From NCBI RefSeq assembly GCF_001194135.2, contig NC_068983.1, positions 164,719,661-164,773,108 of the forward strand: a stretch of 53,448 bases of DNA, written 5' to 3'. Shown piece after piece: positions 45,458 to 48,431 of the stretch; the first letter of the stretch is position 1; each line of letters begins with the position of its first letter. Origin of the DNA: Octopus bimaculoides (lineage: Eukaryota). The translations under genes and the position numbers were made by a program. Under the pieces are notes generated by a model, which was not told the origin of the DNA, did not search any database, and saw only the letters and a list, made by a program, of their open reading frames with translations.

Positions 45458-45573
45458 ACTACTACTACTACTACTACTACTACTACTACTACTACTACTA
45501 CTACTACTACTACTAATAATAATAATAATAATAATAATAATAATAATAATAATAATAATAATAATAATAATAA
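45458..45573. repeat. Compound (ACT)n(AAT)n microsatellite
   Basis: Read directly. Confidence 0.95.
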
Positions 45574-45700
45574 ATACCTACTCCAGAAGCAAGGGAAACT
45601 AATACAAATAGCCACAAAACACGAGCAAAACAAAAAACTGTTTTCAGTATTTAAGGAAGCTGACAAATACAAACAAGAAATCAATCTACCTAACAAATAC

Positions 45701-45769
45701 GAAGAAGAAGAAGAAGAAGAAGAAGAAGAAGAAGAAGAAGAAGAAGAAGAAGAAGAAGAAGAAGAAGAA
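45701..45769. repeat. (GAA)n microsatellite
   Basis: Read directly. Confidence 0.95.
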
Positions 45770-46287
45770 ATGCCCTGATGCAGTACCAGGGAGTTCCTCT
45801 CAAGGCTTCTGATCTAAACTCATCGGGAGCGTTATATACGTTGTTTTGTCTCGGCATTAGATAGACTACAGCAAATATACTGCTCAATATCGCAGATTTG
45901 CCTTTCAGTAGTTTGACCCTTAACCAGTTCAGCATGTTCCTTAGTGGCTGACCATATATGCATCTCTGATCACAAGCAGGAGTAGTGGGGGAGCATCATA
46001 GCCATGTGTTGAGAGGAATTCTTTGAGATTCCAATAATTCGCCTCTGGAAACGTAGGTGTTTTGTTCATCATCCTTAAAATAAACCTTATTCAGAGACCT
46101 TTTAAGTGAGATGGGCTACTCCACCTGAAGAAAATTCGAAGCGCTGCTTATCACCATGTTGCGCACATGTGGTTGAGATGCATGTGCCTAATGTACCATT
46201 AACACACGGGTAGTCATGATGGATATATTGGACTTCATATATTTGTACCCCACTATCACTTCGATGGCATGCACTGCTCTCCGACTC
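45770..46287 (+). mobile_element. Element D copy with a small internal deletion
   Basis: Same 5' start and 3' end as 46355-46910; preceded by (GAA)n, followed by (AAT)n. Confidence 0.8.
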
Positions 46288-46354
46288 AATAATAATAATA
46301 ATAATAATAATAATAATAATAATAATAATAATAATAATAATAATAATAATAATA

Positions 46355-46910
46355 ATGCCCTGATGCAGTACCAGGCAGTGGCTCTCATGGCTTCTGATCT
46401 TAATTGATTGGAAGTGTTATCATGTACATTGTTTTGTCTTTGTATGAAAGATGGACTACAGCAAATATTCTGCTCAATACCACAGATTTGCTTGTCAGTT
46501 GTTTGACCTTAACCAGCTGAGCATGTCCCTTGGTTGCTGACAATATGTGCATCTCTGATCACGAGCAGAAGTAGTGGGGGAGCATCATAGCCAATTGTTG
46601 AGAGGAATTGTTTGGGGTTTGGGCAATTCACCTTTGGAAACATGGGTGGTTCATTCAAGATCCTTAAACAACCCTTTTTCAAGGACCTTTTGAGTAGGAT
46701 GGGCTACTCAACCAGAAGAAAATCCTAACTGGGACCCACCTGCAAGGTCATGTGCTGTTTCTCTTGATATGAGATTACCATGTCGCGCACATATGATTGT
46801 GATGCGTGTGCCTGGTGTACCCTTATCAGACGGGTAGTCATGATTAGTATAATGGGCTTTGTATATTTTACCCCAGTGTCACTTTGATGGCATGCACTGC
46901 TCTCTCACTC
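46355..46910 (+). mobile_element. Full-length ~555-bp non-coding, (AAT)n-flanked non-autonomous retroposon (element D)
   Basis: Begins atgccctgatgcagtaccaggcagtgg and ends ctctcactc(aat)n; homologous to four other copies in the window; no ORF and no clear tRNA A/B box. Confidence 0.8.
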
Positions 46911-47018
46911 AATAATAATAATAATAATAATAATAATAATAATAATAATAATAATAATAATGATAATAATAATAATAATAATAATAATAATAATAATAAT
47001 AATAATAATAATAATAAT
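46911..47018. repeat. (AAT)n microsatellite
   Basis: Read directly; further tracts at 46288-46355, ~47306-47392, ~47688-47768 and 32174-32226. Confidence 0.95.
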
Positions 47019-47305
47019 TTAAAGTGGGAAATACGAAAGTTGTGGTCAATGAAGAGAGTAGACGTGAAACCAGTAGTAATTGGTGCACTTGGAAGTATCA
47101 GTACTCAACTACCAACATGGCTGACAAAGATTGGTGCAAGTATGAAGGTATAACACCTACGAAAGTCAGCATTTCTTGGAACTGCAAGAATTATTCGCAG
47201 GGTTTTTGAAGCTTGACCAGTAAACAAGTGTCACCTTCATCTGCTGAGAGTGGACAGCCGACACTTTCCATCATACCCAGCAAAGTAAGCTGTGAGGTTT
47301 CATAT
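47019..47305 (+). mobile_element. 5'-truncated R4/Dong-clade fragment (RLE C-terminus plus 3'UTR)
   Basis: LKWEIRKLWSMKRVDVKPVVIGALGSISTQLPTWLTKIGASMKV / HLRKSAFLGTARIIRRVFEA* (stop 47214-47216); lies between (AAT)n 46911-47018 and (AAT)n ~47306-47392. Confidence 0.85.
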
Positions 47306-47768
47306 GATAACAATAATAATAATGTTAATACCAATAATAATAATAATAATAATAATAATAATAATAATAATAATAATAATAATAATAATAATACAAACTG
47401 TGGTCAAATAACAAGAAACTCCACGGTATAAGAACCACAAAAAATTACTCACGTGGGTATTAGTCACATTTGAGAAGAATATTGTCAACTTGAAAATACT
47501 TGATTTTCTTTAAAATTTTTCAAAACTAAAATATTACAAATTTAACAGAATCTTATTTCTCAGATTCTGGTCTCCTTCACATACAATACACGGTTGCTAT
47601 TTATAAATAACAACTATAGTAAAATGTCTAACAAGTTATTACTTGAGGTCTCTGGTACGTATTAAATGGACCAACAATAATGTACATGATAATAATAATA
47701 ATAATAATAATAATAATAATAATAATAATAATAATAATAATAATTATAATAATAATAATGATAATAAT

Positions 47769-48431
47769 GATACCAGGCAGTGACTCTCATGGCATCTGAT
47801 CTTAACAAATTGGAAGTGTTATCATGTATAGTTTTGTCTTGGTATAAAAGATGGTCTCACTTGTTTGACCTTAGCTAGTTGAGCATGTCCCTTAATGGCT
47901 AACAATATTTTGAATTTTGAATTTGATTTCCAGGATATTTTGTGTGAATGTGTGCGTATAAGAATCGGTGTGCGAGTTATTATTGGCAGAATGACCCTCA
48001 CGAGGTAAAACAAAATACGTTTCTGTTATGAACACCGCACACACAAACACACACACACACACACACACACACACACACACACACACACATATGCATACAT
48101 AAATGTGTGTGGCGGGGGGAGGGGGGTAGAATGTTTGAAGTGATGAACTGATATTGTACAGGGTGTCCACAAAGTCTGGGTACATAGGGTAAATAGAATC
48201 ATAACATAAACAATTAAATATAAGAAATAAACATTTCTTAAACTATGTGTTATTCCCGTGTACCCAGACTTTGTGGACACCCTGTATATTAAGAAAATGG
48301 AGGCAATCAGGATGTTGGATAATTCTGTATTGATCACGAGCAGAAGTAGTGGGGGAGCATCATAGCCATGTGTTGAGAGGAATTCTTTGAGGTTTTGATA
48401 ATTCACCTCTGGAAACATGGGTGTTTCGTTC
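47769..48431 (+). mobile_element. Interrupted element D copy (47769-47908 plus 48331-48431)
   Basis: Element D sequence stops at ..aacaatat and resumes at tgatcacgagcag.., with about 9 nt missing and ~430 bp inserted. Confidence 0.75.
48159..48284. mobile_element. 126-bp Tc1/mariner-type MITE
   Basis: Perfect 26-bp TIRs (cagggtgtccacaaagtctgggtaca, 48159-48184 and 48259-48284); TA on both sides; paralogous empty site with a single TA at 50739-50740. Confidence 0.92.

Follow-up and report, generated by a model that had tools for sequence, protein, structure and literature searches.

A 53,448-bp stretch of the Octopus bimaculoides genome (contig NC_068983.1; hereafter, the window) contains two arrays in which copies of a non-coding element of ~555 bp, here termed element D, alternate with (AAT)n microsatellites and with the 3′ ends of long interspersed nuclear elements (LINEs) predicted to encode a restriction-like endonuclease (RLE). 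A sequence-only reading of the first array had proposed that D is a non-autonomous element mobilised in trans by a LINE of the Dong type. We derived the layout from direct sequence reading of positions 44800-49200, Tandem Repeats Finder (TRF) and self-BLAST; the second array was detected by BLAST of D against the window and was then read on the minus strand.

Two polar arrays in (AAT)n microsatellites

In array 1, all D and LINE units lie on the plus strand and are interspersed with AAT microsatellites, as seen by sequence reading, TRF and self-BLAST. At the left edge of the array TRF detects a compound (TAC)20(TAA)20 microsatellite on the plus strand ((TAC)20 at 45457-45515 and (TAA)20 at 45514-45573), which is presumed to be the remnant of the original (TAA)n target. 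There follow, on the same strand, a 127-bp piece (45574-45700) that is single-copy in the window, and a (GAA)23 run (45701-45769; TRF) directly 5′ of the first D copy. D1 (45770-46287; ATGCCCTGATGCAGTACC...CTCTCCGACTC) is a full-length-type copy of 518 bp with internal deletions. A 100% pure (AAT)23 run (46288-46356; TRF) forms the tail of D1 and at the same time borders, on its 5′ side, D2 (46357-46910; GCCCTGATGCAGTACC...CTCTCTCACTC), the 554-bp copy that we use as reference. The next run, (AAT)36 (46911-47018; TRF), likewise serves D2 as tail and lies immediately 5′ of a 5′-truncated 3′ end of an RLE-type, Dong-like LINE (47019-47311; identified by tblastn and by the homology of its relatives and family profile to the R2 RLE), the tail of which is an imperfect (AAT)n (47312-47393; TRF). 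Next comes a 295-bp spacer (47394-47688), single-copy in the window and bordered by (AAT)n on both sides, in which we find no open reading frame (ORF) and no homology, and which is either unique DNA or a tailed fragment. The last (AAT)n of the array (47689-47772; 28 units, 92% pure; TRF) is the 5′ flank of a third D copy. BLAST and alignment show that this copy begins at D position 17 (D3a, 47773-47906), is split by a secondary insertion of 424 bp that takes the place of ~9 bp of D (47907-48330; self-BLAST, strand not assigned), and resumes for D positions ~200-300 (D3b, 48331-48431), the remainder and the tail being gone. The missing 3′ part of D3 implies a deletion or rearrangement after insertion.

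The 5′ flank of D1 is (GAA)n, with at most one AAT unit ahead of GCCC. The 127-bp piece and the (GAA)n may have been brought from upstream of the source copy, or the insertion point of D1 may have been a (GAA)n/(AAT)n junction. Joint entry of the 127-bp piece, the (GAA)n and D1 is conceivable because (TAA)n still borders the entire block on its left side and (AAT)n on its right. The 127-bp piece could be a 5′ transduction from upstream of D1 or a fragment of some other tailed retroposon.

Array 2 has the same layout on the minus strand at 30.1-32.2 kb and contains two further D copies and two further RLE-LINE 3′ fragments. Read 5′ to 3′ on that strand, the sequence begins with (AAT)18 (32172-32226), on the other side of which lies the head of a transfer RNA (tRNA)-type short interspersed nuclear element (SINE; head at 32226-32305). 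The (AAT)18 run is the 5′ flank of fragment A (31770-32171; RKSDIVLIEKETK..ITDIAFPADNKV..ERKVERYDRLAWEVKRLWSMKKVAVVPIIVGVLGTV...LLGTARILRKVLEK, then stop), a 5′-truncated and frameshifted LINE fragment with a 77-nt 3′ untranslated region (UTR). The (AAT)6 tail of fragment A passes straight into (ATT)9 (31725-31769), a tail-to-tail junction that may mark an inversion, or an oppositely polarised insertion, where the array ends. A spacer separates this junction from a degenerate (AAC/AAT)n at about 31354-31410, which lies ahead of D4. BLAST and alignment identify D4 (30880-31353) as D positions 1-488, starting ATGCCCGGATGCAGTACC, and D5 (30429-30882) as D positions 94-553, ending ...CTCTCTCACT. 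The two are joined at a GATGGG..TA microhomology, a fusion compatible with template switching or with microhomology-mediated deletion. D5 has an (AAT)~40 tail (30307-30428), which also borders fragment B (30094-30306) on its 5′ side. Fragment B belongs to what would be a third LINE family (...KIALLGTAHILRKTLSIQ, then stop, and a 3′ UTR ending GGATACTC, followed by AATAATAAC...; all on the minus strand), and the array closes with (AAT/AAC)n. The first ~50 nt of the array 2 spacer are weakly similar to D positions 106-150 (z ~4.9), but a full alignment shows no extension of this similarity, and we leave it without an assignment. Array 2 is oriented oppositely to array 1 at a distance of 15 kb and so replicates the pattern independently.

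The order of units and their placement on a single strand, as given for array 1 by the sequence-only reading, are borne out, but D3 is not intact. The start and the cactc(aat)n end given there for intact copies are seen at the starts of D1, D2 and D4 and at the ends of D1, D2 and D5; D3 has neither.

Element D and the LINE fragments

The reference copy, D2, has 44% GC, is CpG-depleted and non-coding, and carries a T4 run at position 76. Comparison of junctions shows that D1, D2 and D4 share their first base, (AT)GCCC[T/G]GATGCAGTACC (start string also given as GCCCTGATG), and that D1, D2 and D5 end ...CTCTC[C/T][C/G]ACT[C/T], with (AAT)n following at once. Five copies lie in the two arrays and ~8-9 were examined overall, including copies at other loci. 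Among the latter, the O. bimaculoides gene model P0005, on the reverse strand, contains the D 5′ end beside at least seven ATT codons (...WYCIWAFIIIIIII), the model P0007 contains (AAT)n adjoining the D 3′ end (LLLLLSERAVHA...), and an Octopus vulgaris transcript given in the PMC9115989 supplement (comp2963_c0_seq1) contains the D 3′ end beside AAT-type sequence (...CTCTCTCACTC, then AAAAATAATAATATTAAT). The tail of this O. vulgaris copy is short and degenerate, with unique DNA beyond it. We found no RepeatMasker line for the transcript in the available PMC9115989 files. A fixed 5′ end is thus common to four copies (D1, D2, D4 and P0005) and the same 3′ end to at least five, and copies are 81-89% identical across long stretches. 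A conserved D 23-mer (AGTAGTGGGGGAGCATCATAGCC) had no matches in JGI metagenome contigs or IMG/VR, collections that hold no Octopus genome, and no contig encoding P0005 was on record. We conclude that D is a discrete, non-coding, multicopy unit with defined ends and 5′-truncated variants.

The sequence-only reading had described D as a ~555-bp element with no ORF and no clear A/B box of an RNA polymerase III (pol III) promoter, and the results agree with this description. The longest stop-to-stop frames differ between D copies, so that no ORF is conserved, and a protein search with the concatenated D frames returned four O. bimaculoides/metaclust models only, all of them D-containing (UniRef O. 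bimaculoides entries). ARAGORN finds no tRNA in the window; an Rfam scan finds no match to any D copy even at E≤10; and an Rfam scan of 45300-48700 finds no ribozyme family (hepatitis delta virus-like, hammerhead), covariance models being able to miss divergent pseudoknotted ribozymes. The T4 run, a pol III terminator, is kept at position ~75 in 4/4 D copies that span that region and argues against pol III transcription of D. Because there is no tRNA, no Rfam match and a conserved T4 run at ~75, D is not a pol III SINE in the strict sense. It has no recognisable head derived from tRNA, 5S, 7SL or small nuclear RNA (snRNA), and no 3′ region homologous to the sampled LINEs, although its true partner family may lie outside that sample; what it has in common with SINEs is that it is a dispersed, short, non-coding retroposon.

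Three other classes were considered for D and rejected. Assignment to miniature inverted-repeat transposable elements (MITEs) or other DNA transposons finds no basis in the ends, the first 40 nt scoring 6 against the reverse complement of the last 40 nt, with a null mean of 5.7. The ends, GCCC... and ...CACTC, are not the 5′-TC...CTRR-3′ of a Helitron. Derivation from a small RNA or a ribozyme fails on the empty ARAGORN and Rfam scans. In a separate observation, antisense D is translated within the O. bimaculoides UniRef/metaclust models P0005, P0006, P0007 and P0008, which include a cGMP-dependent protein kinase model (A0A0L8IH94); an annotation artefact is more likely here than exonisation.

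tblastn with RLE peptides identifies three sites only in the window, those of the LINE fragments. The plus-strand fragment retains an ORF remnant (47019-47213; LKWEIRKLWSMKRVDVKPVVIGALG...LLGTARIIRRVFEA) with one in-frame stop, followed by a stop codon (47214-47216) and a 95-nt 3′ UTR. Fragment A carries the motifs K/RxDIV (RKSDIVL), ITDIAFP (ITDIAFPADNKV) and ERKVERY, the LINE RLE signature being K/RPD...D...EK..KY. No Pfam model matched the fragments. P0003, a relative with 54% identity, can be aligned with residues 999-1091 of the 1121-residue R2 protein 9nl2_A (E=6.6e-4), which is the RLE region, and the family profile also matches R2 RLE regions (E about 1e-3). A profile search of protein collections returned >4,500 relatives, the majority of which are short ORF fragments from contigs of eukaryotes, a coral among them. 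The R2 matches and the K/RPD...D...EK..KY motif agree with the RLE-type assignment made by the sequence-only reading and support, with modest statistics and consistent position, identification of the coding fragments as the C-terminal end of an RLE-type non-LTR retrotransposon.

Because the plus-strand fragment and fragment A share 50% amino-acid identity and the match of fragment B is weak (tblastn E=0.007-0.008), the three fragments, each with a different 5′ truncation point, appear to come from three divergent families, fragment B being the weakly supported one. What the window preserves of these LINEs is the last 65-135 codons and the 3′ UTR, with no reverse transcriptase (RT) sequence, and the R4/Dong label is a candidate assignment based on an annotation prior rather than an RT phylogeny, with HERO families as the formal alternative. 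Dong-R4 is favoured over Hero by this prior because O. vulgaris annotation assigns 92.7 Mb to the former (3.3% of the genome) vs. 8.2 Mb to the latter, according to PMC13282606; the O. vulgaris library has ~51 Dong-R4 and 14 HERO families. RLE clades are generally target-specific, and some HERO families also target microsatellites (PMC4640811).

Probable serial insertion into (AAT)n and proposed mobilisation of D

(AAT/ATT)n runs of at least 4 units make up 627 of the 50,311 non-N bases, or 1.2%, of the window, and all AAT runs of at least 4 units lie inside arrays 1 and 2, save a single run at 28293. The 3′ ends of the RLE-LINE fragments (3/3) and the intact 3′ ends of D (3/3) adjoin (AAT)n. 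The eight D and LINE units are without exception co-oriented with the AAT strand. By comparison, the ~20 copies of the tRNA-headed SINE that dominates the window show no such tail. The 5′ flank is also (AAT)n for D2, D3, D4 and the three LINE fragments. Six intact 3′ ends at a repeat that occupies 1.2% of the window is more than chance.

The same arrangement is found for relatives of the LINE fragments in other organisms. In TARA scaffolds L001-L006, from a different organism, the 3′ UTR is followed by (AAT)n at 4/4 loci; one 5′-truncated copy lies between AATAATAATAAC and AATAATAAC, and at one locus the start of another LINE's RT region lies directly beyond the repeat. In L008 (ENA ERZ25066847), three different 5′-truncated copies are stacked as (AAT)n-copy-(AAT)n-copy-(AAT)n-copy, and L009 has the order (AAT)n-copy-(AAT)n. 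The tail is merely a short AAGAACATA(ATAAT) in L007 and in copy 3 of L008, and in L007 a short AAGAACATAATAAT linker separates the 3′ end from the apparent 5′ part of the following element. Copy 1 of L008 reads from RT-like sequence through a CCHC motif to the RLE in one frame, the RT being recognised by a weak precomputed Pfam RVT_1 match; phmmer against PDB with upstream ORF pieces of the relatives, including this copy, gave nothing at E≤0.01. Because the window, the TARA scaffolds and L008/L009 all show it, we conclude that (AAT)n stacking is a property of the LINE lineage. The (TAA)n targeting that the sequence-only reading had given for this lineage is seen at 3/3 fragments in the window and in two other organisms.

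Several further observations concern these relatives. Fragment-A-like elements with 76-78% nucleotide identity to the octopus copy lie at L007 6100-7000 and 10000-10900 and at L008 7181-10400 (ERZ25066847 / ERZ25066843), and L007 is an inverted duplication of a head-to-tail pair. Neither D nor the octopus SINE is present in the 60 kb seen of the L007/L008 organism's DNA. The 5′ truncation points of L008 copy 3 and of fragment A of the window lie no more than 5 nt apart in A/T-rich sequence, so that microhomology may have had a part in the 5′ join. At L005 1400-1760 (same as L006), the RLE motif IAIPDD follows immediately upon N-terminal-type sequence (...QNRLFSVDQKRFYQEING), and this relative looks like an internally deleted, non-autonomous derivative of an (AAT)n-tailed LINE, of the kind termed short internally deleted elements (SIDEs). 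A 55-bp non-LINE piece at L002 1985-2040, which comes shortly after a LINE 3′ end and has an (AAT)n run on either side, resembles the array spacers.

According to the hypothesis that we favour, and that we judge to be probably correct, both loci are old (TAA/AAT)n microsatellites that have been hit repeatedly by target-primed reverse transcription, with D copied in trans by a Dong-like enzyme. A (TAA)n-specific, Dong-like RLE LINE would cut a single strand of the microsatellite; the (TTA)n 3′ end so released would base-pair with an RNA that ends in (UAA)n, priming cDNA synthesis; and the copy would enter with fixed polarity, ending in (AAT)n, with its 5′ junction formed in the repeat. Because repeat would be left on both sides, the target would be renewed, and later copies would stack into a polar array. 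The LINE copies would be dead, 5′-truncated products of this process, and D would be a ~555-bp, non-coding and non-autonomous retroposon, promoter-less in the sense of lacking a pol III promoter, that uses the same route in trans, its (AAU)n tail being the sole recognisable feature in common with the LINEs. The constant 5′ end of D at (AAT)n suggests either a defined 5′ end of the RNA or 5′ joining by annealing to the repeat. We infer the details of nicking and priming, and the copying of D by a Dong-like enzyme rather than by another LINE.

That D targets (AAT)n is well supported. For D2 and for the plus-strand LINE fragment, the 5′ (AAT)n is the tail of the preceding element, but the (AAT)n upstream of D3, D4 and P0005 is not the tail of any recognisable element, and because of this an RLE/Dong-type enzyme is favoured over random insertion. 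The link between D and Dong is circumstantial: the two have in common an (AAT)n tail, a target or 5′ flank, polarity and location. The check suggested with the sequence-only reading, whether D shares 3′ sequence or structure with Dong, finds no significant similarity in sequence, and no obvious one in fold, to the sampled 3′ UTRs. Smith-Waterman alignment of D with three Dong-like 3′ UTRs and a TARA relative gives z of -1.3 to 0.9 against shuffles, no common 3′ hairpin is evident between D and Dong-like ends in minimum-free-energy folds, and BLAST of D against L007-L009, including the putative 5′ region of a fragment-A-like element, gives no match. These results weigh against copying of D by a Dong-like enzyme, as do the (GAA)n rather than (AAT)n 5′ flank of D1, the loss of the D3 3′ end, a D sample of about nine copies rather than a genome-wide count, and the report, in PMC9115989, that MELT found no sign of recent activity for one O. 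bimaculoides Dong consensus. A further point of the same kind is that the presence of (AAT)n at the insertion sites before insertion is itself an inference. The Dong-R4 families sampled are 3 of the ~51 in O. vulgaris, so the missing 3′ homology is weak evidence. Alignments of D with the 127-bp piece and the array 1 spacer score as shuffles do.

D could instead be mobilised by a different (AAT)n-tailed LINE, for example of RTE, I or CR1 type, with Dong later targeting the tails of D. Such a partner would fit the lack of 3′ likeness, in sequence or structure, to the sampled Dong-like 3′ UTRs and the (GAA)n flank of D1, and in octopus RTE elements a microsatellite of unstated repeat type does form most of the 3′ UTR (PMC9115989). 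We nevertheless consider it unlikely: the (AAT)n 5′ junctions of D3, D4 and P0005 reflect target choice, a hallmark of RLE/Dong elements, no other recognisable LINE remnant is seen beside (AAT)n runs in the window, and the sampling of Dong-R4 families bears here too. Copying by a Dong-like enzyme might, alternatively, require of D nothing beyond its tail. The (UAA)n tail alone would then be the signal for priming and recognition, upstream (AAU)n in a read-through transcript might resolve the 5′ junction, and any (AAT)n-bounded sequence would be a mobilisable retro-unit, a possible source of the headless octopus "unclassified SINE" families. On this account D would lack a promoter, a small-RNA head and a 3′ end of LINE origin because it can do without them. 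The present evidence does not support it directly, and we give it a small chance of being right. Simple-repeat tails are common in LINE and SINE families, as in the (TAA)n of the I factor and the (TGTAA)n of UnaL2, and this speaks for a further account, in which the (AAT)n is D's own tail, made or extended by RT, D inserts without targeting, and Dong and slippage build arrays on the tails. The 5′ (AAT)n of D2 and of the plus-strand LINE fragment, simply preceding tails, would then be expected, as would the O. vulgaris copy with unique DNA beyond its short tail. This account is distinctly unlikely in view of the element-free upstream (AAT)n of D3, D4 and P0005, of the presence of five D copies at just two (AAT)n loci in 53 kb with none elsewhere in the window, and of the co-orientation of all D copies with the AAT strand.

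Two remaining explanations concern the arrays and the extent of D rather than its partner. The head-to-tail placement of D copies with a recombinogenic microsatellite between them would be compatible with satellite-like behaviour, a D+(AAT)n unit having been multiplied on the spot by tandem duplication or unequal crossing-over, and the D4/D5 fusion could be a deletion between tandem copies. However, adjacent copies are 83-84% identical (D1/D2, 83%; D4/D5, 84%), vs. 89% for D2 and D4, which lie on opposite strands 15 kb apart; unrelated 5′-truncated LINE fragments are interleaved in the arrays; and D copies occur at other loci and in O. vulgaris. Because neighbours are less alike than the cross-array pair, serial insertion, as the sequence-only reading had envisaged for the building of polar arrays, is favoured over local duplication, which is very improbable. 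It is likewise hard to credit that D is the 3′ part, or UTR, of a longer LINE or composite whose copies are 5′-truncated. D is non-coding, and D3 and D5 are shorter at the 5′ end (beginning at positions 17 and 94), as such an origin would predict, but D1, D2, D4 and P0005 begin at the same base straight after the repeat, no coding sequence or further homology lies ahead of any D copy, and the longest stop-to-stop frames are unconserved and find D-derived octopus models only.

Copying of D by a Dong-like enzyme can be set beside known systems. Dong is an R4-clade, RLE-encoding and (TAA)n-specific element (Xiong & Eickbush 1993; Kojima & Fujiwara 2004), as summarised in PMC3812793 and PMC4640811, and the former, citing Kojima & Fujiwara 2004, names Dong, DongAg and the snail element DongBg as targeting (TAA)n. 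The window fragments resemble Dong in having a C-terminal RLE, (TAA/AAT)n at the 3′ end, a 5′ junction in the repeat and 5′ truncation, and the occurrence of Dong in a mollusc (DongBg) and the abundance of Dong-R4 in octopus fit them. Unlike Dong, they would represent at least three divergent families in 53 kb, and they are known from their last 65-135 codons and the 3′ UTR. SINEU (Kojima 2015, PMC4494074) is a SINE that inserts into the target of its LINE partner, Tx1-Mar, which is itself target-specific. As with D, a non-autonomous element occupies the target of a target-specific LINE, and partnership is inferred from the shared target; unlike D, which has no recognisable head, a microsatellite target and an RLE-type candidate partner, SINEU has an snRNA-derived head, a Tx1 partner of the apurinic/apyrimidinic endonuclease (APE) type, and a DNA-transposon target. 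The SIDEs of R2 are reportedly short, internally deleted R2 elements that are non-autonomous and non-coding. Like D, they ride an RLE-type, site-specific LINE into the same target and need no pol III promoter; they keep the 5′ and 3′ ends of the parent LINE, whereas D is unlike any sampled Dong-like end. Stringent pairs such as UnaL2/UnaSINE1, and the relaxed pair L1/Alu, use a repeat tail in priming and a borrowed LINE RT. D is like both in its simple-repeat tail and as a non-autonomous RNA that would borrow a LINE RT, but stringent pairs share ~50-100 nt of 3′ sequence and D has no such match to the LINEs examined. With (UAA)n as the sole common feature, D would resemble the relaxed L1/poly(A) mode, but with a site-specific RLE.

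The (TAA)n specificity of Dong and the abundance of Dong-R4 in octopus are already published, and non-autonomous elements that share a target have precedents. No description of a (TAA)n-associated, headless, non-coding cephalopod partner was found in the searchable literature, a broader search giving the SINEU/Tx1-Mar and HERO precedents only; a phrase search for a SINE/Dong-R4 pairing gave no result, which may reflect the tokenisation of the slash. D may sit among the hundreds of octopus "unclassified SINE" families, SINEs (mostly unclassified) making up ~12% of the O. vulgaris genome (PMC13282606). If D is copied by a (TAA)n-specific RLE LINE, it would clearly exemplify how a non-autonomous element takes over the microsatellite target of its LINE partner, and such pairs would build polar, self-renewing arrays and lengthen microsatellite loci. 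D bears on the annotation of octopus genomes and on the interpretation of (AAT)n markers, and it explains gene-model artefacts, being translated in at least two O. bimaculoides models. The missing shared 3′ sequence raises the question of what an RLE-type RT recognises in its template.

Other features of the window

The window has 35% GC, is microsatellite-rich and contains many N gaps. Its dominant repeat is a SINE with a tRNA-like head (~20 copies, e.g., 4932-5151, 11270-11488, 16370-16586 and 37205-37385), which reads ggcggcgagctggcagaaacgttagc...gttcaaattccgccgaggtcgac... and ends ...tagagtagaaa; none of the ~20 copies has an (AAT)n tail, and one of them is the copy that adjoins array 2. 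The sole long (ATA)n run outside both arrays is part of a compound microsatellite, (ATA)17(ACA/ACG)(ATG)n, on the plus strand at 28293-28344; it adjoins a repeat common to 15231-15318, and neither D nor RLE sequence lies beside it. RTE-2_OV, in the account of PMC9115989 (main text section 6), has a C-terminal endonuclease, an N-terminal zinc finger and a microsatellite, of unstated repeat type, that makes up most of its 3′ UTR.

The secondary insertion of 424 bp in D3 includes (CA)26 and one repeat that recurs at 50987-51104. Within it lies a MITE-like element of ~130 bp with perfect 28-bp terminal inverted repeats (cagggtgtccacaaagtctgggtaca...; 48157-48184 and 48259-48286), and the sequence around this element recurs without it at 50705-50784. 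At the right edge of the window, a plus-strand ORF at 52849-53133 encodes a globin-domain exon (Pfam PF00042, E=9e-12), which is probably part of a host globin gene.

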